The position numbers and the translations under genes were made by a program. Of a stretch of DNA of 64,000 bases, positions 3,229-62,644 are shown one piece after another; position 1 is the stretch's first letter; the number at the start of each line of letters is the position of its first letter. The notes beneath the pieces were generated by a model that worked only from the letters and a program-made list of their open reading frames with translations, was not told the DNA's origin and did not search any database. Location: sequence record KT919973.1; one strand, 5' to 3'.

Positions 3229-5298
3229 ATGATTATTCATACCCCTGAAAGTAAAGTCCAAACATCTGGTAAGATGCGAACGGCTGGCTTTAATATGAAA
3301 GCAAGTGCAAAAGGCTTTCGTATTATTTCGACTACACTATACAAAGACCCTATTCTAGCTATTGTACGTGAATTGACATGTAACGGCTGGGATGCTCATC
3401 AAATGAACAAAAATATCGATAAAGCAATCGAAGTACACTTGCCGAATCAGTTTGAACCATGGTTTGCAGTGAAAGATTTCGGTTGTGGTATGAGCGATGA
3501 CGAGATCTTTGGCGTGTACACGACTGTTTTTGATTCGACGAAAGACGACTCGAACGACGTGATTGGTGCAATGGGTCTTGGTTCTAAGACACCGTTTAGC
3601 TATAACAACGGTCAATCGTTCACTGTTAAGTCAACAAAGAACGGTCTTAAAGCGGTTTACTCTGCTTATCTTGATAATGGCGAACCTGCAATCACTTGTA
3701 TGTCAGAGCCTGCACCAACTGATGAGCCTGATGGTGTTGAAGTAATCGTACCAGTACGTAAAGAAGACTTCAATCGCTTCAAAGAAGCTGCAAACAAAGT
3801 AATGCCGTACTTCAAAGCACCTGCTGTTGAGACGAATATCACTCTTTCTGAGCGTAATTTCACTCATATGGACGGTTACTTCACTGAAAACAAGAAGAAT
3901 TCATGGCGTTCTGGTGATGTTTACGCAGTAATGGGCAATGTTTGTTACCCACTAAGTGAATATCACATTCAAGATATTCATCTAGTTCGAAACTACTTCA
4001 AGAACTCTGATCTATACATTGAATTCCCGATTGGTGAACTCGATGTCAGTGCGTCTCGTGAAGAGCTTCACTATGATGACTATACGATTGACAATATCAA
4101 TAAGCGTGTGAATGAAATCAATTCTAAGTTTCTAGCTGAAGCACAGAAATGGGTTGATGATCAAAACTTTGATTATATCGGTGATGCATATCGCGCTTGT
4201 GACAATCGTTTCAATGACGTTGTGCTGAAGAAGCTGAAGTTTAATGACGAGCTTGTGGCGACTTATGCAAGTCGTATGCTTAAAGATTTCCCGATTATGG
4301 GTAAAACTGTACGTATGCGACCTGAGTGCAGCAATAAAGAAGGTGTTCAACGCAATACCCGTGCTGCGCGTCCGTACGACTTGGTCAACCCGCGTAATGA
4401 TTACTCTAAAAAACCGATTACGGTCATTGTTGACGATTTGAAGTCTGGTGGTGTTGCAATCACAAAAGAATATATTCGTCAAGAAAACGTGAGTATTTTC
4501 TATCATCATGACGATAAGCCGTCTACGACTGCACCGTTGGCATTCTTCAAAGAACGTCTTCGTGATTGTGAGTATCGCGTGTTGAAAACGTCTGATTTGA
4601 AAGCGAATTACACGCCTCAGAAGAAGAGCGTCAAGAAAAAACCAGTGTCAGCTACAATTCGTTTGTATGAAATGCGAATTAATGAAGACGGCGAGCGTAC
4701 AGTTAAAGCATCTGACGTTAAACGCGAAGTATTAAAGAGCGGTTCGTTTCATTACGTAAGTCTGTTCCGTGATTACATTGAGAAAGTACCAGAGTGTGGT
4801 CATGGTCTTGATTACCATCGTTCGTTGGGTATGATCGAGACGATTATGCGTATTAAAGGCATTGATGTTGTTTACATCGCTCGACGTCCTGAGTACGTTC
4901 ACATCAAAGGTAATGAAAATGCTGTAAATATCTTTGATATTAAGTTTAACAAGCGTGAATTGCGTAGTAAAATTGATTGGAAATCATACACAGTTGATAA
5001 CAATCTGTACGGGTATCGCAGTGCGCTTGTGATGACGTGGAATAATGATGCTGTTCGTAATCATTTCGGTTACGCTCGTTCTTATCACACGTGTAATCAG
5101 ACGATTGATCGACTGTGCGACCACTTCTCTGCTATTCGCGACGTTCGAACACAAGAGCAAGAAAAGCACTTAGAGAAGTTGAAAAAGATTCAAAATGAAT
5201 CGAAATATGAATTGCTATTCAAACTTGTTGGTTCTAACACGTGTGAAGAATCAACTACAAAACTAATTAAACTCTTGAGAGGAAAACGCAATGGTTAA
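3229..5298 (+). CDS. rIIA: RIIA protector from prophage-induced early lysis
   Basis: GHKL-type N-terminus (LYKDPILAIVRELTCNGWDAH, VKDFGCGMS, GAMGLGSKTPF); 689 aa; precedes rIIB. Confidence 0.95.
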   Translation: MIIHTPESKVQTSGKMRTAGFNMKASAKGFRIISTTLYKDPILAIVRELTCNGWDAHQMNKNIDKAIEVHLPNQFEPWFAVKDFGCGMSDDEIFGVYTTVFDSTKDDSNDVIGAMGLGSKTPFSYNNGQSFTVKSTKNGLKAVYSAYLDNGEPAITCMSEPAPTDEPDGVEVIVPVRKEDFNRFKEAANKVMPYFKAPAVETNITLSERNFTHMDGYFTENKKNSWRSGDVYAVMGNVCYPLSEYHIQDIHLVRNYFKNSDLYIEFPIGELDVSASREELHYDDYTIDNINKRVNEINSKFLAEAQKWVDDQNFDYIGDAYRACDNRFNDVVLKKLKFNDELVATYASRMLKDFPIMGKTVRMRPECSNKEGVQRNTRAARPYDLVNPRNDYSKKPITVIVDDLKSGGVAITKEYIRQENVSIFYHHDDKPSTTAPLAFFKERLRDCEYRVLKTSDLKANYTPQKKSVKKKPVSATIRLYEMRINEDGERTVKASDVKREVLKSGSFHYVSLFRDYIEKVPECGHGLDYHRSLGMIETIMRIKGIDVVYIARRPEYVHIKGNENAVNIFDIKFNKRELRSKIDWKSYTVDNNLYGYRSALVMTWNNDAVRNHFGYARSYHTCNQTIDRLCDHFSAIRDVRTQEQEKHLEKLKKIQNESKYELLFKLVGSNTCEESTTKLIKLLRGKRNG

Positions 5299-6330
5299 CT
5301 TGCCACTCGAAACAAAACAGTCTATCGTTAAAGCATCTGCTAATGGTATGACACAGAAAGACAACGCGGCGAAGCATGGGACTTCGCCAACCACTCTACG
5401 CCGTGTTCTTGCTGAACATCGTGATGGTAAATTCAGCTTGAATACTGCAAAGCAAGTTGTCAAACGCCCGCGCCGTAAACAACATTGTCAAGACGTATTC
5501 AAAGAAAACCTAGAGAAGTTGCTAGACACTACTGGTACTAAAGAGCCAACGCCTAAGACGAAAGCACCTGAGCCTGAAAAGACTCTTGATCAAAAGCTTG
5601 ACGAGGCGATTGAAGAATTCGCTTATGTAATCACGCCAGTTAACGTGTCTTTTACTGTTGACGGTCAAGCTTATTCTGCCGATATCACAGCACCGAACTA
5701 CAGCAAGATCGTTGAAGCATTGCTAGACAATGACGGTGCTACCGCAGTTGAACTTCTAGATGTAGCAAAAGGCATTGAAGAGTTTATGCTTGGTAATGTC
5801 AAAGTGAAAGGTGGCGTTGTTAAGTACAAAGACCTTGATATCGATGGTGGTATGACTGGTCGCATTCTTGAAGCTATGGAAGATGGTGACAAGACTCAAG
5901 TGACTAAACTCGTGAAGTTCTTCGAGAATCTAATCGAGAACCCATCGCGTCGCGCTGTCGAAGAGCTTTACGGCTTCTTAGAAGCTGCTGATATCGAACT
6001 AACCGATGATGGTCACTTCTTAGCGTACAAAAAGATTCGCGACAACTACAAAGACATTCACAGTAACAAAATGTGCAATAAGCCAGGTACACGTGTATGG
6101 ATGTTGCGTCACCAAGTGAACGACAACAAAGATCAAACTTGTTCGCTGGTCTACACGTGTGCTCTAAGGGTTATTTACCACACTTCGGTGGAGCTGCGGG
6201 TAATCGTATTGTACTGTGTAAAGTCAACCCACGTGATGTTGTGTCAGTACCCTCTGATTATAACAACACAAAATTAAGATGTAGCGAGTATCTAGTTCTG
6301 AAAGAGCTAGACCGTAACACACTAAAATGA
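5291..6330 (+). pseudogene. rIIB: rIIB with an apparent 1-nt deletion between 6144 and 6145 (or a sequencing error)
   Basis: Conserved rIIB text ...NDNKDQTCS continues as AGLHVCS...KVNPRDVVSVPSDYNNTKLRCSEY only in the frame of ORF 6097-6330. Confidence 0.85.
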
Positions 6331-6482
6331 TTAGTCTAGAACTGATTAAAGTCATTATGTTTATGCGCGAGAACGATAGTCATCGCGCTAATTATCATGA
6401 TGACGAGACTGGTGAGTTTCATGTAGTAACCCGTCGAGAAGACGGGTTCTATATTGAAGGGACTAAGATATGTGAACTATGA
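6327..6482 (+). CDS. 51-aa hypothetical protein
   Basis: ATGA overlap with the rIIB stop; open to TGA 6480-6482. Confidence 0.5.
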   Translation: MISLELIKVIMFMRENDSHRANYHDDETGEFHVVTRREDGFYIEGTKICEL

Positions 6483-7172
6483 TTTGTGTTTGCAATTGTC
6501 AAAATGCCAGCGTTTCGATGCTGGCAATGTCGTTTCTTTACCACAATGTGGGCATACTACTTTGATGTTGTTCGGGTTATTCTTCTTCATGCGTTCACTC
6601 TTCTTTTCACGTTCTTCAGTTGACATATTTTCTGCACGCTTTCTACTTGCCTCTGAAATCTTGCGACGCGCTTCATCGCTATGAGACTTACCGAACATAC
6701 CATGATTCTCGCCCGAGTTTGCTTCAGATAGTTTTGATTTAGTTTCATCTGACATCGAACCTCTTTTCTTACCTCTCTTTGCTTCTGACATTTTGCGTCT
6801 AGATTCGATTGATGCTTTCTTACCTTTATTGTGCGGGGTTTTGCCTTTCTTAGCCTCTGACATTTTTCTCTTTGATTCATCGGTGTGTTTATAGCCAGTG
6901 ATACGCCCAATACCACCCGGGACTATATTGTAATTGCTCTCTGAAAGTATATACTCGTCAGTTACAATTGATGATTCAAGTTCGTACATTTCGTCTTCAG
7001 TACCAGACGCGATCACCTGCATATCGTCAAATGTGATACCATACTTGCGTATTGCTTGACCGATTGCATAATCTTTACGAGCGTGTTCGTTGAATCTACG
7101 CTTTAAGTCAATGGTTACCCCGATGTACTCTTTTCCATTAACAGGGTTTGTGATTTTGTAGAGATAAGCCAT
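6477..7172 (-). mobile_element. Free-standing GIY-YIG (Seg-like) homing endonuclease with NUMOD3 repeats
   Basis: YLYKITN...EYIGVT...RFNEH; repeats HTDESKRKMSEAKKG and HSDEARRKISEA; antisense to its neighbours. Confidence 0.9.
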
Positions 7173-7203
7173 GTTATTTTCCTTTTCAATGCTTTATACC
7201 ATG

Positions 7204-7211
7204 TATTTATA
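7204..7211 (-). promoter_or_regulatory. T4-type late promoter for the Seg-like endonuclease
   Basis: Exact TATAAATA on the minus strand, about 30 bp upstream of the ATG; AAGGA RBS. Confidence 0.8.
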
Positions 7212-7255
7212 ATAAGACGACGTGTGTTTGCATAATAAAACCAAAATAATTTTAA

Positions 7256-7330
7256 AAAAGGGTTGACTTCGGTCAACCCTTTTGTGTATTATACAACTAC
7301 TGAAACGAAACAACGAAAGAGAACATTATG
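7256..7330 (+). promoter_or_regulatory. Terminator/early-promoter/RBS cassette (PeSL-like)
   Basis: AAAAGGGTTGAC-TTCG-GTCAACCCTTTT hairpin containing -35 TTGACT; -10 TATTAT; ACTGAAACG at +1; GAGAACATTATG. Confidence 0.9.
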
Positions 7331-7942
7331 ACTGCACAACAAATTATCGCTTCACTAGAATCAACATATGACATCGACTATGCTTGTACAACTACTGATG
7401 GTGAAGTTCACACAATCACTGAGTATCGTGAAATCATCGGCTGTCTTGTAGTTTCACCGCGTCGAGGTAGTATTGGTGTTGGTTATGTTCATGATGACGA
7501 CACAGATGAAGTTCAACCGTATGATATTACGTGGTTCTCGTCTGATGACCTAAATTCTATCGAAGTTCACATTGATTGCTTATAAGAGGAAAACATTATG
7601 AAAACTATGAACGCTACTGACTTACGCGCTGTTGAAACACTAGTTGAACAAAATGATGCAGCGGTCGTCGATAAAGAAAAATACCGCAGTGCTCTTGCTT
7701 TCGCATATGGTTGCATGAACGGGATTCAACGAGAAGTATATCGCGATTATCACATGAATGTGTTGGTCGAGCGTTATGACATTGAGTACTGCAACGATGC
7801 GCAAGTGATCTTGCCTTACGGTGAATTGAAGTCAACTATCAAATTCATCAAAGAAACTCTAAGTGCTTCTGACTATGCAGAACTTAAAGAATACTTTCAA
7901 TTCACGATTGCACTGGCGGTGAACGACAATGAAACGATTTAA
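7328..7942 (+). other. Two hypothetical CDSs: 7328-7585, 7598-7942
   Basis: ORF track and RBSs. Confidence 0.75.
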
Positions 7943-8612
7943 GAAACATATTCGAAAATACGATGAGCACGGGGTTGCTCAGTATAATATGCTGATGATA
8001 TTCGGTTTGATGATAGTAATCGCTCTATCAATAGCACTTACTGCGGCAAATATACTATTTTCATTCGAAATACAAAACCCTGACGCGAACATCACAACAC
8101 CGGGTGATTCGTTCTGGACAGTATGGATGGCAATGAGTACAATCGGTTTTGGTGACAAGTACCCTGTCACTACGGGTGGTCGATATGTCATCGGGTGTAT
8201 GTTTGTTGTTGGTACATCGTTACTTGGTTTGACTATTGGTATTATCAACTCATGGGTTGTGTCTAAGTTTGATAAAAGCATTCAGAATCGCGTGTTGAAG
8301 AGTCAGAACGATGCATTATTGCACAAACTAGACCGTCTTGAGACGCATTTAGGCATCGATCAAGAAGTTCGATTTGATAAAGACGCACATGGTATAGATA
8401 CAATAATTGACCAGTATTTTGACAGCAACGAGAAAGCCGATAGATTTGTTACACTTGGTCAAGATGATAGCGGTCGATATGTCGTAGCAATAAATCAGCT
8501 AATGGTCGAAACGCAACATACATCAATGAAGTGGCATACTTTCATCAATGAAAAAGATGCTGTTAAATTCTTTGAAGAAACTAGTGAATTATTTCACACG
8601 GAGCTATTATGA
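7929..8612 (+). CDS. Two-TM potassium channel (KcsA-like) with C-terminal coiled coil and extra domain
   Basis: TM1, pore helix GDSFWTVWMAM, filter STIGFGDKYP, TM2, then LKSQNDALLHKLDRLE. Confidence 0.9.
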   Translation: MKRFKKHIRKYDEHGVAQYNMLMIFGLMIVIALSIALTAANILFSFEIQNPDANITTPGDSFWTVWMAMSTIGFGDKYPVTTGGRYVIGCMFVVGTSLLGLTIGIINSWVVSKFDKSIQNRVLKSQNDALLHKLDRLETHLGIDQEVRFDKDAHGIDTIIDQYFDSNEKADRFVTLGQDDSGRYVVAINQLMVETQHTSMKWHTFINEKDAVKFFEETSELFHTELL

Positions 8613-9100
8613 TTCGTAAAATTACACTCGTTGCACTAGCAACACTGGCACTTGCCGCATGTGACAACAAACCTGCGACGCTTGATACTAACGCTTACTA
8701 TGCTGAACAAGAAGATGAACAGCTACTAGTTGACGCACCAACCACTGAAAAGTTTGACGTGACGCTGCCTGTTGTTGAAGAACAACCGCAACAACCACAG
8801 ACGGTCGTTGTACAGCAAGATGACGGGTTTGATTTAGGTGATGCAGCGATTGGTTTTGTTGCTGCTGAGTTAATCGACGAAGTAGGTGATTCTTTTGAGT
8901 CGAAGAAGACGCACGTTAAGCAAGTTGTAATCAAGCAGCCTGTAAAGAAAGCGCCAGTGATTAAACGTGTTGAACCTAAAAAGGTAGAAGCGAAGAAGAT
9001 AACAAAGACTGTAGTCAAGAAGAAACAGAAAAAAGAAAGCTTTTTAAATCGAGCAGTCAAAAAAGTGAAAAAATCGAAGTTTAAAAAACGTCGCAGATAA
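8609..9100 (+). CDS. Lipoprotein with a very basic C-terminal tail
   Basis: Lipobox LAAC; acidic middle; Lys/Arg-rich last 60 or so aa. Confidence 0.8.
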   Translation: MIRKITLVALATLALAACDNKPATLDTNAYYAEQEDEQLLVDAPTTEKFDVTLPVVEEQPQQPQTVVVQQDDGFDLGDAAIGFVAAELIDEVGDSFESKKTHVKQVVIKQPVKKAPVIKRVEPKKVEAKKITKTVVKKKQKKESFLNRAVKKVKKSKFKKRRR

Positions 9101-9130
9101 AAAAAGGGAGCAATTAGCTCCCTTTTTTTT
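9099..9130. terminator. Bidirectional intrinsic terminator
   Basis: A7-GGGAGC-AATTA-GCTCCC-T8 between convergent genes. Confidence 0.9.
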
Positions 9131-9131
9131 G

Positions 9132-9689
9132 TTATTTTGACTTCTTAGCGGCTTTTTTAGCACGTTTAGTAGCCTTTTCAATCTTTATCAGCTCTGCTTC
9201 CATCTTCTCAAGACCTTGAAGATATTGATCAGATTGCTTGATGTCGCTACGAAATACGCCTTTCGCTGTTGCAATATCAATGTCACTGTTGAGACTTGTG
9301 CGAAGCTTACGAACTAAGAACAACGAACGCTCTAAGTCTTTTTCAAATGCTGCTACTTTCTTCTCAGTGATATCGTCTTGTTTCAGTGAGCGATACTTCT
9401 CGATTTTCTTCATAGTCTTTTTGAGTTCGCTGTAGTCTTTGCGTGCTTGACCGCCTGCAAATAACGCACCACCAATAAGACCATGAATACCGAGACTAAT
9501 TGCACCCCATGTTGCAAGTGGTACAGCGACTGCCAAACCACCTGTTGCTGTCGCACCCGCTGCTGCGGTCATAAAGCCAAATGCAGCACCGAGAGATGCA
9601 CCAGCTAATGCAGAACGACCAGCCCATTGCTTTATTGTAGCTTCTTTAAGCTCTGTTTCTTTATATTCATCAAATGTTTTAAGTTCCAT
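9132..9689 (-). CDS. Putative late internal-head/injected protein with a Gly/Ala hydrophobic hairpin
   Basis: N-terminus MELKTFDEYKETELKEA resembles the T4 capsid-targeting sequence; long G/A-rich hydrophobic stretch; AAAGGA RBS. Confidence 0.6.
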   Translation of the reverse strand: MELKTFDEYKETELKEATIKQWAGRSALAGASLGAAFGFMTAAAGATATGGLAVAVPLATWGAISLGIHGLIGGALFAGGQARKDYSELKKTMKKIEKYRSLKQDDITEKKVAAFEKDLERSLFLVRKLRTSLNSDIDIATAKGVFRSDIKQSDQYLQGLEKMEAELIKIEKATKRAKKAAKKSK

Positions 9690-9715
9690 CACGGTATTCC
9701 TTTGTTGTCAGTAAT

Positions 9716-9812
9716 AAAAAACGAGGGAAGCGACTATAGTTGGAACCAATACTCGCAGTGACCAATGCGATACATAGTCACGACCCTCGAAACTGAATAA
9801 AATATTGTGTAT
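9716..9812 (-). ncRNA. Candidate structured RNA or leader (multi-stem, ends in U6)
   Basis: Stems CGAGGG/CCCTCG, GACTAT/ATAGTC and TCGCA/TGCGA nested within 9722-9789; no ORF; upstream late-like promoter. Confidence 0.5.
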
Positions 9813-23111: not shown

Positions 23112-23858
23112 GCTAGAATTAAATGGACACTTGAACGTCTTAAAGAAGATGCGTTGAAATACAAGACACGTACTGAATGGTGTAAAAACTCACAAGGTGC
23201 TTACTGTGCTGCGTCAAAACGTGGGTTACTTGATGAGTGCTGTTCTCATATGCATTCATCAATTAAAAACGCATTTTCTCGGTGTATATATCGAATATAT
23301 GCAGATAATGAGATTTACATTGGGTTGACTTACGATACTAAGCAACGCTTTAGTTCTCATCGAAAGCAAACACCTCAGATTATTGACCTAATCGAACGTC
23401 ATGGCATTGAAAACGTCAAGTTCGAGCAATTGACTGATTATATGAATCAAGAACTGGCGCAGTTGTCCGAGAAAGAACACATCAAACAGTACAGAAATGA
23501 CGGATGGGTTATTTTAAATCGTTCTAAGGCTGGTGCATTAGGGTGTTCAACATTAAAATGGACACTAGAACGTCTCAAAGAAGATGCATTGAAGTACAAG
23601 ACACGTACTGAATGGAAGAAAATGTCGAGCGGTGCTTATATGTCTGCTTATAGACGAGGATTGGTTGATGAGTGCTGTGCTCATATGTCATTGATGAAAG
23701 GTTATTGGACACTAGAACGTCTTAAAGAAGATGCATTGAAATACAAAACTCGCAACGAATGGCAGAAGATGTCGAGCGGTGCTTATTCTACTGCTAAGAA
23801 AAAAGGCTTACTAGATGAGTGTTGTGAACATATGCCGAAAAGAGCCAAACGAAAATAA
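23109..23858 (+). mobile_element. GIY-YIG endonuclease with three ~44-aa WTLERLKEDALKYKTR...DECCxHM repeats
   Basis: CIYRIY...IYIGLT...RFSSH catalytic module between repeats 1 and 2. Confidence 0.8.
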
Positions 23859-23864
23859 TTTAAT

Positions 23865-23939
23865 AAAAGGGTTGCGCTATGCAGCCTTTTTTTGTATTAT
23901 AGCTTTATCGAAACGACAACGACTAGAGAGAATATTATG
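23865..23939 (+). promoter_or_regulatory. Terminator/promoter cassette (right flank), near-identical to 23049-23084
   Basis: One mismatch over about 36 bp; ATCGAAACG at +1 (23907). Confidence 0.9.
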
Positions 23940-36200: not shown

Positions 36201-37773
36201 TATCAGATACGGTATGCCGTATAAACCAGAGCCAATTGAATTCGATGCGGGTGATGATCAACTAGATGAAGAGCCAAGATGGTTTGATTCTCTAAGTCAC
36301 ATGCATGGTGGTGGCGGTGGTGTTAAACGTTACTGTGAGCTGACTAACGCAGAGAAATACTGGCGAACCAACTTCGGTAAAGTGATTTACTGGTTCGAAG
36401 CACCTGAGAATCACATGAGCGGTCATGATTTCAAAGATTACATGATTGCAGAACTTAGCAGTCGCGGTATTGACCCTGATGAAATCACTGGCGATTGGGA
36501 AAAGATTGAACACGGAGATATCAAATGCATCAAATGACAGTACACGTATGCGACTACTGCGATTTTCAAAGCATATTGCAAGGCGAAGTTGCAGCTCATG
36601 AAAAGCGTTGCGCACAGCACGACACGTTTTTAAAAGTCAAAGCAATTCAGCAAGCACAAGCAAGCGCATATCTTGATACGATTCGTTTACGTGCAGCTTC
36701 GTTCAAACACTTGTTTGAAATCATTCAAGATGAAGAAGACATGATCATCGAAGCGGTTCACGTGTTACACTACTACGGCGATGCACGCAAGACGCCGCGA
36801 ATGATGAATGTTAGATGGGAATATTGTCTTTTCAGTACTCAACACAAGCCATTTATCGAAGCGCGTATGACACACAGTGCGCCAGTTGGTGAGAAGACTT
36901 GCTCGATGTGGTCAGAAAACAACGAAGATATTAAGCGCGGTCTAGCTTGCAATATTCGTTGTCATTGGGAACAGCAAGGTAGTAGAAAATCGTTTGATTT
37001 GTACCGCAAGTATCTGGGACACATACCAGGTGTTAACTGTGGTTCGGGCGGTGGGGTTGGACAATGCAATTCTTATCTAACACTATGGAAAGATGACTTT
37101 CCATTAATTCGAGGTTAACATGAAATACGTATTGAAAGAAGAAGGTCGCAACTCAAGTGTCATCCCAACTGGTGACATTGGTTTACTCGCACACGAGGAT
37201 GAAGAAAATTACGTCTACGTGTATTGGTTTAGTGCTGATGAGTTGCATCATTATCATAAGTCAGATAATGCAATTTCAATTCAAACCAACAACTGCCCTG
37301 ACAAGAAAGCCATTGCGCGTGCTAAACATCTACTTGAAATGGGCCAGACAACTGACGAAGAACGCGAAGAAACGATGACGTTCTTCCAGAATAAAGTTCA
37401 AAATGTTCTTCACAACGCGACTGAGTTTGCAAATCGCATCAAATACAATTTGTCGGAATTTGAACAATTCGACTGCTCTGAATTCACGCTGACAAGCGTA
37501 GTGTTAGACGAAGATGGTGATGTCTGTATTCGCTTTGATGAAATGTATGCGGGTGGTGATGAGGGTGTAATTACGTACTCTCATAACATTCAAGACTTCT
37601 GGGACGCTGAAAGCACTGTAAAAACGATTCAAGGTTACATTGACGAGGCGAAGCAACGAGACAAGAAAATGAAACTTGAACAAGAGCGCGAACAGAAAGA
37701 AAACGAAACTCAAGAGAAAAAAGAGCTTAAACGTCTCATGCAGAAATACATTTTCAGTGAATTACAAATTTAA
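33201..37773 (+). other. Run of hypothetical CDSs: 33201-33785, 33785-34087, 34069-34320, 34292-34564, 34557-34802, 34984-35556, 35588-36145, 36145-36537 (DUF551-like start), 36525-37118, 37120-37773
   Basis: ORF track, RBSs and coupled junctions. Confidence 0.7.
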
Positions 37774-37775
37774 CT

Positions 37776-37849
37776 AAAAAAGGGTTGCTTCGGCGACCCT
37801 TTTTGCGTATTATAGCTACATCGAAACGAGATACAGAGAGAACATTATG
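37776..37849 (+). promoter_or_regulatory. Terminator/promoter cassette
   Basis: AAAAAGGGTTGC-TTCG-GCGACCCTTTTT; TTGCTT-17-TATTAT; ATCGAAACG at 37820. Confidence 0.9.
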
Positions 37850-38686
37850 AACTACACAACTGAAACAATCACAGCTTGCATGAATCTAGTTGCTACATTG
37901 AAATCAGACAAGATTACAAAAGGTAATGTCGAGAAGCTTCGCGCTGCATATCGCGCACAGCAAGATCAAGAAGTGTCTATTGCTATGTCTTCTATCTGTT
38001 CGATTGCAGAGCGTCATTTAGACCGCAAAGCAGCGAATCGTCCTGCAATGAGTAAGTGTGCTGAATCTTACTTGAACTTTGATTGGCGTACAATCCCGGG
38101 TTGTGTTGGTTTTTCACGTGAAGTACTAGAGGTGTAACATGGTTAGTCTTTTAAAAGCAGTTAATAGTGAGTTCACGAGCTATACAGATCGCGTACTGCC
38201 TTCTGAAATCGCAGAGAAAGTCGCTCGTGCGTGTGAGCAAGAATATTGGGCAACGTTTTACACACACGATTGCAAGTCACTTGACACCGCTGATCGTGAT
38301 GTCGTATTCGATCTAATTGCAAACGAGCTTGGTCTTGAAAATGGGTGGCCTATGTATGGTTCTTCTGACGAGTACAAGCAACAGTTCAAACAAGAACTTG
38401 AGAAATTGGAGAAAGCATGAAACTACTAGCTAAAATCAAAGAATTTCTTTTCCCGACGATTACACCACCTGAAATCGGTGAAAGATATCTTCAAATTGGC
38501 AAAGATTGGGTTGACACGAGCGTTGGAGCGAATATAATCGAAGTCGTGAATGTATCGAAAGACGGTAAGCATATACAATATGATTGGGTGTGCATCGAGG
38601 GCAAAGAGATGTCGATATCGGCTAGAACTACATACGAAATGTCAACACACCACCTTTATAACTATTTCGAGAAACATGATGACTAG
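37847..38686 (+). other. Hypothetical CDSs: 37847-38137, 38139-38420, 38417-38686
   Basis: ORF track. Confidence 0.7.
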
Positions 38687-45891: not shown

Positions 45892-46010
45892 GACGCTTCG
45901 GCGTCTTTTTTTTTCGGGTTGAAGAAAATAATTGCAAAAAGTGGTTGCATGAAACAACGAATAGACCTAATATAGCTACATCGAAACGAAACACGAAAGA
46001 GAACATTATG
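45890..46010 (+). promoter_or_regulatory. Terminator AAGACGC-TTCG-GCGTCTT + early promoter cassette
   Basis: TTGCAT-17-TAATAT; ATCGAAACG at 45980; GAGAACATTATG. Confidence 0.9.
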
Positions 46011-49000
46011 AAAACTCATCTACGCGACAACGCAGTAACAAGCACAACTCACATCGAACTTGAAATCACAACTGAAGTACTAGGTTGGTTCAATAATGAA
46101 TTCAATCAAGCTGACGGCTGGGTGATTGTTGCACTAGATGAGTTCGAAAAAGCGTTTCTTGAAAATGCATCAATCGACCACTCAAATGTGTATCGCGTTA
46201 TGAACGATGATCGCACTAGCTTGTGTCGAATCGACGTTGAAAATGAAACATATGCGTTTCTCGACAACGGTGAGTTAATGGAAACTGGCATGTACAAATT
46301 CGAGCGACCTGCTAAGTATCGTTCACTGTACATTGACAGCAAAAATGAACTATTCAATCAAGGGAAATAATATGTTGAAACTAACTGTGTTTGATATTGA
46401 ACAAGTCGTTCAAGTAGGCATGCCGATTCGCGTACAGAACATTCGCACTGAAGAAGTCTTTACAACTCATGTCGGTTTGATTCGCGGTCACTACGTTGCA
46501 GTGTATGACGATGACAGCATTTACACGTTTACTGACGGGACTCGATTAGATGACTCTGAGCTGTTTCGTCTAGCAGACAACGCAACACTAACACACATTT
46601 AAAGGAAAACATCATGTTTGGTTTTGTAGAAGATATTTTCGATAGCGCAGTTAACACAGTTGATGATTTCATCAACGACCCGATTGGTCAGACTGTGCAT
46701 CACGCAACGTCACCGATTCGCGACGCAGTTGAGATCATCGACGGTCTAACTGAAGGCGAAATCAGAGGTATGGCTGTTGCTCGTCTAGGCGCAGATGTTG
46801 CGGCTGGCATGGCAATTTCAGAAATCATCGAAGAACTTGAGCTTGGAGAATAGTAGTGACAGTACAAAAAGAAATTGTCTGGAAACGTCACGTATATTTA
46901 ACGTACTATCATGCGTTTATAATCACGTTCAATGTATTCATTGCATCGTCAATGTATGAACATGCAGTACCGACAATCATCGGGTTGCTACCTGGGATGG
47001 CGATTGGTGTCAGTTCATGGCTAATTTTTGACATGTGGTTCGATAATAGAAAAACATTCGTTAAAGATGTGCAGGCTCCCGTAAAACATCTAGTCACTTA
47101 CCTTATTGAAAAGATGAGTAAGAAAAATGCCTAAAGCAATCTTCACACTATTTCGAATAGTAGCAATATATGCAGTTGGTGTAATGACACCTTCTTTATA
47201 CGCACACAGCCCAATGATGCTCATCGCACCTGCGATGGTTGTAATCGGGTTCGGTGTTTCACTAATGACGGATATAGTATCAAATGAAAAAAACTAAAAT
47301 CGACGCAAGAATCGGGATGTCGTCTCTTTGTGGTGTATCAGGTTCATTCCCGTTCGCACACGGCAATTACTGTAGCAACTCACAAGGTTATTACTTTGTC
47401 AACTTATGGGCAGAGAATCTTAAACATCTAGTAGCTAACGATTACTTGCCTGACGGGCAAATCGAAGTGCTGTTGTTTAGAGACAATATGCAACAGAACT
47501 ACGTTTATGCCTACGTTATTGACGAGCGTGTGCCGAAAGAAGCAATTCACGCGCCGTACTTCTGCGGTATTGCGACCTCAGTTGAGATTATGCGCTATCA
47601 TCATCAAACACCAGACGATAAATGTCTATGCCATTCTGAAGACCACAGATTGCTTAGTGTTCGTTCGCAAGACTTCAAAGGTCGTACAGTACGGCATTGC
47701 CCTGAGTGCGACACTCGCTACACTATTCAGATGCCAAGGCGCGACGCTATCTTCCGTGTTCAGACGTTTACCGAAGACGGCTGGGGTAAGTGGAAGCTAC
47801 TGTATCACAAGAACGGTGTTTTCTACACGATCCCTGAAAATGAGCCGGTAGCTGCCGAAGACATCATCAAGGTTGACGTGAAACCGGTGAATGAATTCGG
47901 TACTGGCGACGATCAGCAAGCGGCAATCTCGCTTGAGCAATTTAACTTCAGTGGCGTTGTTGAGAAAGCAATCCCACAAGAAGTAGACGGCAAGATTGAA
48001 TATATTGTACAAAAATAGTACAAAAATCGGCGTTCCTGCGGAGCTGAGTGTCTGGCGACACTGTTTCAGCTCCTTGGTTTATTGAGGTACTTATGGTATT
48101 CACTGAAGAGCAGCTTGATCAAGTCGAGCACAACTACTCGCATATTGATACTGTCAATCTTGCAGATAGAAAGGGCGTGCCACAAGCGAAGTATGTCATA
48201 GAGATACGACAAGGCACGTATACTAAATTCAAAACATCTTGGTTAAGTCAAGATTCATGCGAAGAGCGAGATATTGACCCAGAACTAGTCGGTTATTGGA
48301 TCTTATCAGACGCAATCGACCCTTATTGGTACTCAGTTCAAGAATGCTTAGAGAAGTACGAATGGGAACCAGCACACGAAGTAACAATCACAACATGGGA
48401 AGCAATTTAATGAGCACAAATTCAAGCATTAGCATTACACAAGAAAACGGTCAAGTTCGTTCAATCTACTGTCACTGGGATGGTGGTTTATGGGATGGTG
48501 GTGTTGCTGACAATCTACTTCAGTTCTACCGAACAGAAAACGAAATCAATGCACTTATCGATCAAGGTGAATGTAGCTCACTTAGTGGTACAATCGAAGA
48601 TAGCGTTTTCTACGCTCGTGATCGTGGTGAAGACCTTACGATCTACATCGACAACATCCCCGAGCAAGAATACAACTACATGTTTAAAGACGGTAAATGG
48701 TTTGTATGTTGTCCTGAAACAAATTGGGAAGATGTCGTTCTAACAAACGAGCTTCGAATTGAACTTGAAAACTGTGAAGACTAATCATGTCAAATTATCA
48801 ACCCGAAGAAATAATCAAAGACGCTTCTGGTAACGAATATCAGATCGGCGCGTATTATAAAGTCACTGAGACTGAACCCAATTGGGGATTTCGAGAATCT
48901 AGAATCGTACAGATGGTTCCTAATTTCGATTTTGCATATCATACAGTCGAAGAAGTTCACGGTGTATTCGGTACAATTCGCAAGCCGCCTCCGAAATTAA

Positions 49001-49600
49001 TCGAAGGCAAAGCATATATGTTCTGCATGTGTGATTCTAACGAGCGTAGCGTAGGCATATGGGGCGGAATAGACAAAGGCTTTGTATGCGGTCCCGTTCA
49101 ACTTAAAATGTCTCAAATCGACGCACAGACGCTATCAGAGGTATAGATGAAAACTACGTTCTTTAATGCATCGGGAAATGAAATGAGCTATCAATGGTTT
49201 CACGTACCGTTTGCTTATACAAAAGTGAATCTCGGTAACAAGCAATTGGTGATTGCTGAGATTTCACGTAATGTAAAACGCATCGCGTATGCATTACGAA
49301 ACAACGATACAGGTCGTATTGGTATTGTTCGCTTTAAACCGATTCATGAAGATCGTAAGCGCGGAAAATACTTCGAATACAAAGGTAATAAAGTTTTCTT
49401 GAAAGATGTCGGAGTTGTTCTATGAAGTGTGAAATCTGCGGACACCCTGACGGGTACAGTGATGGTGTTGGTATGATTCTGTGCAATGACTGCTACAGTT
49501 TAGCACGCAGACCATTTATTGCCTACACTGAAGAAGAAAAGCCAGTTATCGTGCCTCCGTCACTTATAGACAAAATCAAAAAACTTTTCGAAAAGGGTTG
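46008..49600 (+). other. Hypothetical CDSs: 46008-46370, 46333-46602, 46614-46853, 46856-47134, 47284-48018, 48048-48410, 48410-48784 (IYCHWDG motif), 48787-49146, 49147-49425, and a small Zn-finger ORF ending at 49600
   Basis: ORF track plus manual reading. Confidence 0.65.
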
Positions 49601-49666
49601 ACAGATGTCAGCCCTTTTTTGTATTATAGCTACATCGAAACGACAACGACTAAAGAGAACATTATG
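49591..49666 (+). promoter_or_regulatory. Terminator/promoter cassette
   Basis: AAAAGGGTTGAC-AGAT-GTCAGCCCTTTT; TTGACA-18-TATTAT; ATCGAAACG at 49634. Confidence 0.9.
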
Positions 49667-50982
49667 ATTACACTATCTACAAACAAAGAACAACTAGCTA
49701 TCTTCTGCGTACTTGATTCAGCACTAAGTGCTCCAATCATGAACTTTGTTAAAACAAAGACAGTTCTCGACTCTACCGTGTATGAACTTGAGTTGTTGTA
49801 CCATCTTGAGTTGTCACGCGAAGATGTTCTTGCATTAGCAAAAGCAGTTCAAGCAAGTGACTTCGATCACGTCGATGAAATCGGTCTTATCTTCAACGAA
49901 TCAATGTCAGAAATGCTTTTTGAAATCTACGAAGAAAACGACACAGAATCTGTTCACGGTATCGCACTATAAGGAGCGCATTATGATTTACTCATTATCA
50001 CCTGTACTTTGGTCTTTTCAAGATGTTGAGCGACAAACCGGTCTTCGAATTTGGGAAGAAATGATCTCTAACGTCGAAGGCACTGGCATTCGTTTGTTTG
50101 CTGCGAAGTACAATCAATTTGTTTTTGATGCAGTTCACCCTAGCATACCGCTATGTGATCACTTTAATGTACTCGAACCGCTAGATGCGACAATCAACTT
50201 TCATAAAAACAGCTACACGATTGTTATCATTACAGAAGATTCATTTGATGTGCTTTTCTCAGAGCGTGCAAGCGAACGTACAATCGCTGACGTTGAAGAT
50301 CTTATCAACAATTGTGCTGAAAGATGGAATGAAGATCGTCTATGCACGCACGAGCAGCGTTACATAATCGAGTGGTGCAGTGCTAGTCAAGACTACATCA
50401 TCAACACAGTGACATTTGACCGTAAGTGGGGTTAATCATGGAATGGCTTATTTTCTCGGGAGTATGTGCTTGTATTGCCATATATCTGACTTGCAAAAAA
50501 GACTGCAAGCATGACTGGATGATCGTCAAAGACGAAACAACGAAATCAAGTGGTGAAGTATACGGCGAAATGACAGGCAACGTCCCAACACCTCGTAACT
50601 CATATCACATGCAAGAACTCACGTCACGCAAGCGTATTATCATTATGACGTGCGTGAAATGTGGTAAGATAGACAAAACAGTGGAGACTATCTAATGCAG
50701 TACACGTTAGAATTACTAAATGAAAAGCTCGAATCTCTGAAGAAAAAACAATTCGGGTGGGTTGTAGCATTGCCTCACAAACAAGGTGGTGAAATTGCAG
50801 TTGTTCAGAAAATCATTTCTGACATTGCAGTACAGATTACATCAATCGAGCACGATATTAAACTTATCGAAGCTTCACGCGGGTTAAACGCAACGACTGT
50901 TAAGCAATTAGTTGATGAGCACTACCGTGTACATCACGGACTTGATGAAAACGACAACTTTATTACACGAGCGGCAGACTAA
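49664..50982 (+). other. Hypothetical CDSs: 49664-49972, 49857-50435, 50426-50695, 50695-50982
   Basis: ORF track. Confidence 0.7.
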
Positions 50983-53404: not shown

Positions 53405-53529
53405 AAAAAGCCCCTTAATCGGGGCTTTTTTTAGGTCTGAAGAAAATTAATCAAAAAAGTTCTTGACGAGTGTTTAGAATTTACTTATTATGTGTCTATC
53501 GAAACGAAACACAGAAAGAGAAAATTATG
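53403..53529 (+). promoter_or_regulatory. Terminator GCCCC-TTAATC-GGGGC + GGTCTGAAGAAAAT + early promoter
   Basis: TTGACG-17-TATTAT; ATCGAAACG at 53498. Confidence 0.9.
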
Positions 53530-55589
53530 ACAAAAATTATTATGACAAGCGATATTCACTTCGGTCACGCTTCTGTATCATCAAATGATTTAGTGACTAA
53601 GCTGTTCAAAGAAGTACTGCGTAGTAACAACGTTGGTTATGGCAAGCTTTACCGCGAGAAACGCACGTCAACGCATCGTAGCAACATTTCTGGTAAGAGC
53701 GTACGATTTGTCGGGATACGTCTTTCTGTCCCTGAGAAGACGATACAGAAGGTTCTACGCGAGTTTAACGACATGCTTCCAAATGACTATGTTGCCGAGT
53801 ACAACAAGCCGTGGTGTCGCTTCGCATCTTCATCATTTCAAATTTTTAAGAAGTAGATTATGATTAAAAAAGACGTTAGTCGCCTTACTGTAGGCGACAT
53901 TACAGACGATACATTCTGGAATAGAACTGAATGTCTTAAAGAAGGCAAGTACTCACTAACTGGCGTTCAGAAAAACGGTGAAAAATTACCCGAATACGAG
54001 CACGACGATCTAGAACATATTGTCGCAGTCGTCGAACAGTCGATTTTAGATCGAAGCAGTGGTTCTTACATGCGCCAGTTCAATCGTCACATTGTGATTG
54101 AGTCATCTGAAAATGTATTGCACGTTCGTCTCGGTTACGGTTCAAAAGATAATCGTTCACCAGGTAATTATCTTCACGAAATTAAAATAGAGGTTAAAAA
54201 TGACTAAAGGTTGGTCTGATTACGAGCTTGAAGGTCGCTCGAAGCCAAAAGACCCTGAGCGTCACAAAATGCAAGACTCAGTTGATGAAATGTGTCGTAT
54301 AATGAAAGACGAACATGAACGTTTTTCAGTTTCAACGCACACGGTCGATTTCGATAACGGTATCGAATTGTGGCGCAGTGATATGAAACGTATCTGGGCA
54401 GGTCGTTCTTCGCAGATTGTATTTACTGAATCGCAAGCACGACAATTACGTGATGCGTTTGTAATCGGCATGAAAACGAAAAAAACACAAGCACAAGAAG
54501 AGATTGAACGTCGATTTTTGCATCGCGAACCTGAAGAAGATTCACTTCGTTCTGAAGAAGATTCACTTCGTTCACAAAAAGAGCGTGATCGCGGTATCGG
54601 TGTAGTAGTTCTCGGTGAAACTAAGAAAAAAGACAAGAAATGGTGGGAGTTTTGGAAATGAAATCACAAGATGAAATGACACGACAAGCTATGCGTGTAA
54701 GAGCCGCAGTCGGCTTATTCGATACTGAAATTCGCTTTCAAGATGCGTTAAACGATGATTTATCTTATCGTGGACAGCGTGTGATGTCTGCGTTGCCAGA
54801 AAACATTCAATTCATGTGGCAGAAACGCGACGAATTGAACGACAAAATCCTAGCTGAGGTCAGTCGTGTTGAAAAACAAATTGACAAGACGCTATGCGAA
54901 ATCAACGATCCGTTACATGCAATCGGGAAATATGTAGCGAAGAAATCAGGCAAGCCGTTTAAAGGCGGCGAAGATATTGTCAAAGTGACTGGTATTACAA
55001 AGCATCCGTACACTGAAGGTTATGCGTTTACTTACAACTACTCTGAAGACAACGGTCAACTTGCACAATCATACATTCACACGGCGATGGTAATCATCAA
55101 CTATTCAAATTTAAACCTATGATTATTTACGAAAACGGTCTACCAGTTAATAAATCAGAACCCAAACAAGAGAGTAAAACAATGTTAGAAAAAGTAAATG
55201 AATTTGTAAAAGCAAAGCCACTTGTATCACTTTTAATCGCAGTTGCACTAGGTGTAGTCGGTACTAAAGTGATTCAGTCAGACCCGTTAGCTGAAAAGCC
55301 GCTACTAAAATACCGCGTTGTATACGAATACAACAAAGACTACGGTCGCGATTGTGGTGAATTAGGTAATGGTTACTACTGGTACACTCAAGAACTCAAC
55401 GAAGGTATTATCTTCGATCACTGGGAGCCAAGTGGTTGGTGTGATGAAACAGAATCAGGTGCACGCGCTTTAGCTGAATCAGCTATCAAAAATCGCATCG
55501 AAACAGAGAACTCAAAGAAACGAGTTTATCAAGCATGGGCAACTAAGGAAGACTCGGTACGATTCGAGCCTCTAAAGGTGATTGAATGA
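53527..55589 (+). other. Hypothetical CDSs: 53527-53856, 53860-54207, 54200-54661, 54658-55122, 55119-55589
   Basis: ORF track. Confidence 0.7.
54531..54573 (+). repeat. Perfect 21-bp in-frame tandem duplication (EEDSLRS x2)
   Basis: CTGAAGAAGATTCACTTCGTT twice. Confidence 0.95.
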
Positions 55590-60962: not shown

Positions 60963-61038
60963 GGGTTGCTTCGGCAACCCTTTTTTTGTATTATATCTAC
61001 ATCGAAACGGGATACGAAAACAAAGAGAGAACATTATG
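60963..61038 (+). promoter_or_regulatory. Terminator/promoter cassette
   Basis: GGGTTGC-TTCG-GCAACCC-T7; TTGCTT-17-TATTAT; ATCGAAACG at 61001. Confidence 0.9.
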
Positions 61039-62644
61039 CAACTAACTACTAACATGACTAAAGCTCAAAAAACTAAAGTTGTTGAAGGTTTCAACTTCGA
61101 GCGCGAAACAAATCAAGGTCAATATAAGTTTCGTAACGGTTCTTATGCTATGGAAGGTTCAGATGTCGCTCGTCGATTCAATCTAATTTCAACTATCGTG
61201 ACTGGTAAGCCAGCTATTATCGCTGAAGCGACAGTTGCTGATTTCGACCGCATTATTCTTATGCAAACAATGACAGATCAATTCTTAACAATGAGTGCAG
61301 GTGCTGCTTCTCTTGAAGAATCTAACGAATTTGGTAAAAAGGTGCTTGCACACTTCGCTTAATTCAATTAGAATACTTACATCAACTTAAAATCGCTCAA
61401 ATGGAGACAACATAATGGGTTCATTCAACACAACTTGCGCAATCTCACGTACACCTATTCTAGAAGGTCAGAAAGCGCGTGTGTTCTTCTTAGTCATGGA
61501 CACGTTTGATCAGCATTACAACTTACGCTCGAAATCGCTCTACAGCAATGTTCTAATGGGAAGTAAATGTTACCCGTGGGATACGTTTAAAGTCATTGGT
61601 TACCCGCTTCTAGCTAAGTATGCTGACTACAACAATTATGAATTCGAAGACGCTGATATGGAATCGTTGACGCTCAAGGCGATTAACAACATTTATATGC
61701 CGAATCGTGTTCCAGAAGGGAAGTCGCTTGACGACTACAACGAATATCACGATTACATGGAAATTGATGAAATCGAAGATATGAATCAACTTCAAGACAT
61801 GGAACATAGCGGTGCGTTGCGTGTGAAAACGTGTCACGGCGTTAGTCTGATTGCGAAAATGGCAATTCACGAAGAGATTTATCAGCAAATGATTCTCGAT
61901 GGTACGTATACTACGGGTTGGGGTGAAGACGCGAATACATACACGTTTACAGAAGAAGTTGACGAATTTGTAGCGAAATATTCAAAATCTACATCTGATC
62001 TTGAAATGATTTCAGCTCGTGGTAGACTTCAAATCGAACGTGCGCGTATTGAACTTGAAAAAGACGATACGAAAACAGAAGATGAGAAGAAAGAAATCAT
62101 TGATAGTTTAATCGAACTGCAAGTTGACATGGTTAAATTTGATACGCAGTTCGAACGCTCAGAATGGTTGACTGAAACTCACCCGATTGTTGACATGAAA
62201 GAAAACGATTTCGGTCAAAAGATTGCTGAAGCATATATCGGTGGTAAATGGACGTCTCGCTTCTTCTTGGCGAATAACCTTGAATTTATGCCTGCTATGA
62301 CTTCTGGTCAATGTCACGACATGTGCGCGGACGCTGAACGTCTTCGTAAAATGGCAGACATCATCGAAGATCTACAACCAGATTGGTATTTTGAAGAATC
62401 AGTTCAACTCAAAGTCGAGCGTACAACTCGTCTGACTCTACGCCGCGAAGACCTGCACGAGAAGTTCAGCGAATGGTATGACGAAGATGACCAAGAATAT
62501 CAAGATTATCTTGCTGCCGTTGAATACATGAATGAACAAAGCAGCTTCACAGTCGGTGATAAGAACTGTAAAATGGCTCAATTCATCGAAGAATACGATG
62601 TGCTACGTGATGTAGACGACGGTCAAGTAATTAATTTCAACTAA
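61036..62644 (+). other. Hypothetical CDSs: 61036-61362, 61415-62644 (MGSFNTTCAIS conserved-looking start)
   Basis: ORF track and RBSs. Confidence 0.75.

Follow-up and report, generated by a model that had tools for sequence, protein, structure and literature searches.

The 64,000 nucleotides analysed here (the window) are bases 1-64000 of the genome of Vibrio phage phi-ST2 (KT919973.1), and positions 7000-9800 agree with the record at 100% identity and in the same coordinates. According to the record, phi-ST2 infects Vibrio alginolyticus and belongs to the genus Schizotequatrovirus of the Straboviridae, the KVP40-like T4-type phages. The third gene of a short operon on the + strand (7929-8612) is a genuine and intact K+ channel gene of the two-helix type with an extra tail domain (Table 1). 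The vibriophage K+ channel family to which it belongs is already known and published and is not a discovery of this work. Greiner et al. 2018 (Viruses 10:456) described at least nine vibriophage K+ channels, that of phi-ST2 included, with the motif (T/S)T(I/V)GFGD (PMC6163359), and orthologues are annotated in phi-pp2, VH7D, ValKK3 and others. The same survey noted that the phage proteins are longer than the nearest bacterial relative (228 versus 158 residues) and called their function speculative (PMC6163359). The abstract of the phi-pp2 genome paper of 2012 mentions the channel (PMC3468402), and a paper of 2020 states that K+ channel genes exist in Vibrio and Mycobacterium phages (PMC7650704). 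A literature search for the function of vibriophage K+ channels or for the timing of KVP40 expression returned only the genome surveys of 2012 and 2018, and no functional study.

Table 1. Features of the channel operon and of the recurring cassettes in the phi-ST2 window
Feature	Position	Strand	Product or residues	Basis and remarks
K+ channel gene	7929..8612 (including stop codon)	+	227 residues, ATG start	Open reading frame finder; Pfam, PHROG, PDB and model matches
Outer transmembrane helix (TM1)	7989..8069	+	21-47	Hydropathy; model helix 21-47
Pore helix and filter S-T-I-G-F-G-D	8100..8156 (filter 8136-8156)	+	Pore helix 58-69, filter 70-76	Sequence; model
Inner transmembrane helix (TM2)	8172..8264	+	82-112	Hydropathy; PDB alignment; model
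Post-TM2 helix	8265..8351	+	113-141	Model helix 117-141; heptad pattern; motif D-x-S-x-x-N-R-x-L-[KR]-x-Q
C-terminal domain	8364..8609	+	146-227	Four antiparallel strands and one helix (model)
Regulatory cassette	7245..7327	+		Stem-loop 7256-7283 with -35-like TTGACT (7263-7268), T-run, -10-like TATTAT (7287-7292), conserved leader
Recurring cassettes, about 85 nucleotides	7245-7332, 23840-23920, 37765-37851, 45925-46012, 49580-49668, 53443-53531, 60965-61040			Before + strand gene runs
Operon gene 1	7328..7585	+	85 residues	Uncharacterized; phrog_20248; in closest relatives only
Operon gene 2	7598..7942	+	114 residues	Uncharacterized; phrog_14270; end overlaps channel start by 14 nucleotides
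Operon gene 4	8609..9100	+	163 residues	Predicted lipoprotein; phrog_13991; ATG overlaps channel stop (ATGA)
Operon terminator hairpin	9099..9129		13-bp stem-loop	T-runs on both sides (promoter/terminator scan)

The pore module is recognized by sequence and by structure prediction alike. In a hydropathy scan, residues 21-47 and 85-112 (approximate limits) stand out as strongly hydrophobic. The sequence between these two spans includes D-S-F-W-T-V-W-M-A-M-S-T-I-G-F-G-D-K-Y-P, in which T71-I-G-F-G-D76 satisfies the K+ channel signature T-x-G-[YF]-G-D. Six of the 22 residues ahead of the first span are Lys or Arg, and a cytoplasmic N-terminus is therefore expected. Pfam Ion_trans_2 (PF07885) matches residues 35-111 with 37.2 bits (E 2.8e-9), where the cut-off is 22.5. 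Ion_trans also scores above its cut-off (E 2.2e-8), the match covering the S5-S6 part of the profile only (positions 127-231 of 241). In the PDB, the pores of Kv2.1, Kv1.3 and KcsA are matched at about 1e-8, and the alignment with KcsA pairs, besides the filter, W63, D76, Y78 and G95 with W67, D80, Y82 and the hinge glycine G99 of KcsA.

The AlphaFold2 model, built from an alignment of 34 sequences, has a mean predicted local distance difference test score (pLDDT) of 88.9. It consists of helices 21-47, 58-69, 82-114 and 117-141, followed by four strands and a final helix, and the first three helices, which correspond to the two transmembrane helices and the re-entrant pore helix, are modelled at pLDDT above 88. 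In Foldseek the pore part of the model superimposes on KcsA with a root mean square deviation of about 2.3 Å over 99 columns and a target-normalized template modelling score of 0.81; across the KcsA chains the values are 2.1-2.5 Å, 96-99 columns and 0.80-0.82. A Pfam score above threshold, two transmembrane helices with a pore helix, a signature filter and the superposition on a solved K+ channel are thus all found in one protein, and by sequence and fold together they qualify it as a K+ channel pore module. We take the sequence and the model to indicate that the protein is a subunit of a channel on the KcsA plan, with two transmembrane helices and one pore. The original prediction, which had read from the letters a KcsA-type phage channel with a transmembrane helix, pore helix, STIGFGD filter and second transmembrane helix, is borne out on both counts.

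Conservation follows the same pattern. The family alignment of 34 sequences shows no variation at W63, T71, G73, G75, G84 and G95 and little at F74 and D76 (conserved to at least 90%); among the 19 full-length members D76 does not vary. Between phi-ST2 and KVP40, the ratio of non-synonymous to synonymous substitution rates (dN/dS) is 0.11 for the gene, and every part is constrained (residues 1-112, 0.106; post-TM2 helix, 0.02; C-terminal domain, 0.17). These data bear on the possibility that the protein is a non-selective cation pore, or a membrane protein without channel function whose channel-like sequence is a relic. Such a view could draw on two replacements visible in the KcsA alignment, namely that of KcsA Glu71 by the conserved Met67 and that of one of the two pore-helix tryptophans by Thr64. 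It nevertheless appears very unlikely, because each position of the filter has a counterpart in proven K+-selective channels (Ile at the second position in Kir and K2P channels, Phe at the fourth in Kcv and hERG), and because the invariance within the filter, the strong purifying selection and the match of the modelled fold to KcsA all argue against it. A match of the whole protein to SieB (E 0.071) lies below the cut-off and is judged to be a chance hit of the hydrophobic stretch.

The names given to the family in databases are partly misleading. PHROG 15627 matches over positions 1-227 of 227 (E 2.7e-153). The orthologues are called "putative potassium channel protein" in phi-pp2 and PG216, and "cAMP-dependent Kef-type K+ transporter" in RefSeq copies, in nt-1 and in PHROG 15627; VH7D, ValKK3, Va3 and others also annotate them as potassium channels. 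"Voltage-gated K+ channel, subfamily A", found in several GenBank records, does not fit a protein that lacks the S1-S4 voltage-sensor domain and has about 20 residues before TM1 and two transmembrane helices in total; the name is a transfer from the best BLAST hit. The Kef-type name is a misnomer as well, as the protein shows no CPA2 antiporter, KTN/RCK or cyclic-nucleotide-binding domain: neither Na_H_Exchanger nor TrkA_N nor cNMP_binding is found at E up to 1, and no NCBIfam family reaches its cut-off. Rejection of these two names is a useful addition to the published description.

The deposited gene model also needs correction. In the phi-ST2 record the channel gene is split: the coding sequence phiST2_0016 (8127-8612, + strand, "hypothetical protein", 161 residues) starts at Met67 within the pore helix, and an antisense coding sequence of 37 residues, phiST2_0015 (7979-8092, - strand), overlies TM1. 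The single reading of 227 residues is correct, because it is 99% identical over its full length to orthologues in ten other phage records and its N-terminus is conserved as far as KVP40. The dN/dS of 0.106 for residues 1-112 refers to this frame. PhiST2_0015 is spurious and phiST2_0016 is N-terminally truncated. The truncated form of 161 residues is present in UniProt and BFVD (A0A126HHV5) and has also entered the literature, where the phi-ST2 protein is said to lack "the first TM domain" and ways in which a truncated channel could work are discussed (Greiner et al. 2018; PMC6163359). The published loss of TM1 in phi-ST2 is an annotation artefact; this finding, like the corrected model, is an addition of the present analysis. 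In the KVP40 records the homologous place carries no annotation, yet the open reading frame is present at 80% identity.

Outside the membrane, three conserved parts can be distinguished. The N-terminus carries a family motif, D-E-[HY]-G-x-x-E-Y, that is modelled with moderate confidence as a small hairpin. The helix that follows TM2 is the most constrained part of the gene and is also present in the short bacterial relatives. Within residues 117-141, L123, N127, L130, L134, L137 and L141 occupy a/d positions of a heptad pattern that can be read from the sequence. The original prediction had placed a C-terminal coiled coil here; helix and heptad pattern agree with it as a putative coiled coil. 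The natural reading, by analogy with full-length KcsA, is that the helices would form a cytoplasmic bundle at the gate.

The third part is the C-terminal domain, which had been noted as an extra domain of about 70 residues and is indeed there, at about 80 residues (146-227). Modelled alone, it has a pLDDT of 88.8 and a predicted template modelling score of 0.78, with strands 158-166, 170-178, 184-192 and 198-205 and helix 208-224. All 19 full-length members have D157, G177, D179 and G182, and nearly all have H154. Because of the strand order of an antiparallel meander, these five residues are expected at the same end of the sheet, an argument from topology and not from coordinates. Their predicted proximity points to a site of binding or contact. 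Purifying selection acts on the domain, which on its own is matched by no Pfam or NCBIfam family. A hit to Zot (E 0.076) is attributed to chance.

The relationships of this domain are narrow. Its best Foldseek matches, a PUR-alpha repeat, the PARP1 WGR domain and Whirly, share the plan of four strands plus a helix. The matches are weak (best E 0.026, template modelling scores 0.44-0.56, 10-25% identity), and for this reason the domain is assigned to none of these folds. Against viral models, the sole significant match is the truncated phi-ST2 entry. A homologue search restricted to residues 146-227 finds only the three closest phage clusters, and a hidden Markov model of the domain, run against all six-frame open reading frames of the fetched loci, detects channel fusions only, with no free-standing or otherwise fused copy. 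It is tempting to speculate that we are dealing with a previously unrecognized gating domain of K+ channels, in which D157, G177, D179 and G182 together with H154 bind a cytoplasmic ion or ligand. A divalent cation, for instance Ca2+, would be a candidate, because other phages place the channel directly after genes for a Na+/Ca2+ exchanger and TerD. We regard this idea as doubtful. If it were true, large vibriophages would carry a ligand-gated K+ channel in a phage-encoded toolkit for ion homeostasis that seizes the host membrane potential early in infection.

The four genes of the operon are joined by overlaps or very short gaps. A ribosome-binding site, AAAGAGAA, lies in the cassette ahead of the ATG at 7328. 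By alignment, at least seven cassette-like copies precede + strand gene runs in the window, and they share a G+C-rich stem-loop with TTG(A)C, a T-run, TATTATA, the leader ATCGAAACGA, AAAGAGAA and ATTATG. The claim of an early, cassette-driven operon is thereby upheld as far as the stem-loop and promoter cassette (7245-7330) is concerned, and the early timing would follow from the promoter type, that of a sigma-70-type cassette. The cassette looks like a combined terminator and early promoter, and the unit may be mobile. It resembles the "promoter-early stem-loop" cassettes that have reportedly been described in T4-type phages. No late-type TATAAATA motif is found on the + strand between 5000 and 11000. 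Judging from these signals, early transcription by the host polymerase is likely.

The promoter type also speaks to a proposal that Greiner et al. raised from the analogy of T4 and T5, whose infections are accompanied by K+ efflux (PMC6163359). Following the chlorovirus model, the channel could be part of the virion, pass into the host membrane and raise its K+ conductance during genome injection. The place of the gene argues against this: its neighbours are non-structural genes, its operon has an early-type cassette, and no late-type TATAAATA promoter is present on its strand between 5000 and 11000. Since tailed phages moreover have no internal membrane in which an integral membrane tetramer could be carried, the proposal seems extremely improbable.

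The rIIB region and the channel operon are separated by an insertion (6477-7243) with a segD-type gene for a GIY-YIG homing endonuclease (6477-7172, - strand); a late-type TATAAATA motif is present at 7211 on the - strand, just upstream of this gene. Phi-Grn1, VH7D, ValKK3 and others lack the insertion, and their match to the window begins at 7244. At the other end, the hairpin listed in Table 1 is likely to terminate both the channel operon and the convergent gene at 9132-9692 (- strand). In the 186-residue product of the latter, a double membrane segment rich in Gly and Ala occurs together with a long charged helix; its weak matches are to the PADLOC LeoBC model (E 1.3e-4) and, at E 0.031, to a holin family.

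The operon partners have a restricted distribution. Homologues of the 114-residue gene are confined to Schizotequatrovirus phages, among them 1.081.O with 42% identity, and the last gene is confined to close KVP40-like relatives. The product of the latter matches LPAM_1 weakly; its lipobox, L-A-A-C, has Asp at +2, the middle of the protein is acidic and rich in Gln and Pro, and the Lys/Arg tail is extremely basic. Asp at +2 is a signal for retention of lipoproteins in the inner membrane of E. coli. Jackhmmer searches with the three partners found none that accompanies the channel beyond the KVP40-like phages. As the partners are not shared with other phage families, we reject a conserved multi-gene module, and the channel looks like a self-contained unit.

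This neighbourhood could be taken to mean that the channel is a controlled depolarizer, which blocks DNA entry of later phages (superinfection exclusion) or sets the timing of holin lysis. The channel gene is found two genes downstream of rIIA/rIIB (3229-6277), to which the annotation gives a role in lysis inhibition; it has an early-type promoter and is translationally coupled to the gene of a predicted lipoprotein of the inner-membrane type, a class that includes exclusion proteins in other phages. However, neither the lipoprotein nor the rII neighbourhood is kept with the channel in other phage families, and the region after rIIB contains the homing endonuclease insertion and many orphan genes, so that adjacency is weak evidence. 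In addition, a K+-selective pore moves the membrane potential only as far as the K+ equilibrium, which amounts to a partial depolarization. On balance, we consider a dedicated depolarizer unlikely.

The view that K+ channels are rare in phages, which had been part of the original prediction, agrees with the counts: among 50,697 phage records, 37 contain a member of the family, and all of these are from Vibrio phages. The carriers are KVP40-like Straboviridae, the T5-like Demerecviridae phage VCPH, 187-kb phages of the D69 type and jumbo phages of 320-350 kb. VH7D, ValKK3 and phi-Grn1 are among the ten records with 99% identity to phi-ST2, and KVP40 and phi-pp2 are at 80%. A profile-free exhaustive search of 1.84 billion representatives gave 3,411 matches at E up to 1e-3, eight of them below 1e-30, and about 18 clusters match over the full length, C-terminal domain included. 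A scan of bacteria with one genome per species found 323 loci. Among the 80 of them that were listed, most come from marine Gammaproteobacteria (Colwelliaceae, Alteromonadaceae, Oceanospirillaceae, Vibrio sinus), and 79 match at about residues 5-141 only and hence represent a short form. The exception is the long form of Ferrimonas pelagia, with 223 residues and 47% identity. In strain JCM 18401, this copy (L002/L003, BAABJZ010000104.1) lies near sucABCD, among ordinary chromosomal genes and without recognizable phage genes.

A maximum-likelihood tree was calculated from the N-terminus, pore and helix only, and with few columns it has many unresolved forks. The long forms fall into a single, well-supported group, whose 26 rows comprise 24 long forms, a protein of 160 residues and a VCPH-like protein in which the tail is degenerate. 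Nested in this group is the Ferrimonas copy, and the chromosomal short forms stand apart. Apart from Ferrimonas, every long form with a readable context sits among phage-like genes. The nesting of the Ferrimonas copy inside a phage-associated clade suggests that it was transferred from a phage. A reasonable reading of the sequences, though not proof, is that a short channel of marine bacteria gained the C-terminal domain once, in a phage-associated lineage, moved among vibriophages, and returned to a bacterium at least once. The recognition of the domain as a mark of a phage-associated clade is new here.

The genomic contexts of the relatives differ between bacteria and phages. Short forms end PspA-family operons in 37-39 bacterial loci. 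A typical run (L054 3677-6453, similarly L017-L019, L024-L027 and L045-L048) has the order DUF2170, PspA/IM30 protein, DUF4178-like protein, open reading frame of about 110 residues, channel. Such runs, tight and on the same strand, occur in Colwelliaceae, Alteromonadaceae and Psychrobium; the Oceanospirillaceae differ in having the channel behind purE-purK. Runs of the PspA type link an uncharacterized K+ channel family to a membrane-stress operon. Among phages, the long form lies one small open reading frame downstream of a Na+/Ca2+ exchanger (CaCA) in D69 (L090 2058-4133) and in a metagenomic contig (L092 1991-6639). Pfam Na_Ca_ex confirms the exchanger in both (E 5.9e-31 in D69), and the two exchangers are 50% identical. 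In the contig, three TerD genes and a nicotinamide mononucleotide transporter adjoin the channel and the exchanger. At another locus (L086 4446-6618), an open reading frame of 366 residues occupies the matching relative position and is a candidate only. The exchanger and the channel may thus form a phage gene set for ion handling; a tblastn search with the phage exchangers detected none in the 64-kb window of phi-ST2, where this pairing is not seen. Both contexts hint at a role in ion balance and membrane stress, with which they are compatible, and as additions to the published picture they can guide experiments.

The bacterial context and the horizontal spread could also be read as signs of counter-defence, in which the channel offsets the collapse of ion gradients in abortive infection or pre-empts signalling by K+ loss. 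Spread among unrelated vibriophage families is often seen with anti-defence genes, and the bacterial relatives sit in membrane-stress operons of the PspA type. Yet PADLOC, run on the channel and its four neighbours, returned no defence-related match for the channel, and no linked defence or anti-defence genes were recognized nearby. A selective path for K+ can, moreover, not compensate for a non-selective pore. We therefore judge a role in counter-defence to be distinctly unlikely.

Taken together, the data make it likely that phi-ST2 produces, early in infection, a K+ channel of its own, whose K+ conductance pulls the membrane potential of the host towards the K+ equilibrium. The operon would be transcribed early by the host RNA polymerase, and the protein would enter the host inner membrane with both ends in the cytoplasm, as the six basic residues before TM1 imply. 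Four copies would assemble into a K+-selective pore, with the post-TM2 helices bundled in the cytoplasm at the gate, and the C-terminal domain may sense a cytoplasmic signal that sets the opening of the channel. By textbook values, seawater contains about 10 mM K+ and the cell a few hundred mM, which puts the equilibrium potential near -90 mV, less negative than the potential of an energized bacterial membrane. A large passive K+ conductance would draw the membrane potential of the infected Vibrio cell towards this value. An energized cell would then take up K+ electrophoretically and might in this way replace K+ that had leaked out at genome injection, and a depolarized cell would lose K+ and repolarize. 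The phage might benefit because K+ is restored, because the potential is steadied during takeover, because later phages are hindered by partial depolarization, or because holin timing is shifted. The sequence does not choose among these possible benefits. Nor does anything in it favour one of superinfection exclusion, counter-defence and lysis timing, the three roles that had originally been put forward, over the others.

Several points weigh against this picture. Conductance, selectivity, tetramer formation and localization are predictions for every member of the family, and the early timing is deduced from the promoter type only. The sensor role of the C-terminal domain is a guess: the domain has no significant structural relative (best E 0.026, template modelling score below 0.5), and the clustering of its conserved residues is deduced from the modelled strand topology. 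The direction of K+ flow would depend on the membrane potential and K+ content of the host during infection. Finally, most T4-type phages lack the gene, which is therefore an accessory one. The vibriophage family is a good entry point to the role of K+ channels in tailed phages, being conserved in the well-studied KVP40-like group and having an orthologue in nt-1, which is grown on Vibrio natriegens, a laboratory host that is not pathogenic.

Among known systems, the channels of phi-pp2, nt-1, VH7D, ValKK3 and phi-Grn1 (PHROG 15627) are the closest. They belong to the same family and have the same (T/S)T(I/V)GFGD motif, and only the gene model of phi-ST2 sets it apart. The short channels of marine Gammaproteobacteria share the N-terminal motif, the pore, STIGFGD and the motif of the post-TM2 helix, at 34-44% identity over about residues 5-141. 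In contrast to the phage protein, they end after this helix, at about 130-165 residues, and have no C-terminal domain; they are chromosomal and often part of PspA-family operons. The similarity to KcsA of Streptomyces lividans, a pH-gated channel, extends to the plan of two transmembrane helices and one pore, the pore helix, the filter, the hinge glycine, the W/D/Y residues around the filter and the cytoplasmic helix after TM2. However, identity is about 25%, the filter reads TIGFGD in the phage protein and TVGYGD in KcsA, and KcsA lacks both the N-terminal D-E-H-G...Y motif and the domain of about 80 residues with four strands and a helix. As KcsA Glu71 corresponds to a Met (Met67) that is conserved in the phage family, inactivation in the manner of KcsA is not expected. 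Gating by pH is a feature of KcsA, for which there is no evidence in the phage channel.

MthK, with its RCK domain, and KirBac resemble the phage protein in that a pore with two transmembrane helices is followed by a cytoplasmic domain that could gate it. The comparison is a working analogy only, since neither Pfam nor the fold matches reveal an RCK/TrkA_N, Kir C-terminal or cyclic-nucleotide-binding domain in the phage protein, and its C-terminal domain is much smaller. Kcv of PBCV-1 and its relatives are likewise virus-encoded K+ pore modules with two transmembrane helices, often with a GFG filter (PMC6163359, PMC7650704). They are proven channels of algal viruses, with about 80-125 residues and almost no cytoplasmic parts. 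The phage protein does not fit the class of miniature channels of the Kcv type by size, its residues 113-227 being a cytoplasmic helix and domain. With 227 residues, about 135 of them cytoplasmic, it comes from a tailed phage and groups with bacterial and not with algal-virus sequences, and its cytoplasmic parts suggest that, unlike the minimal channels of the algal viruses, it is subject to regulation.

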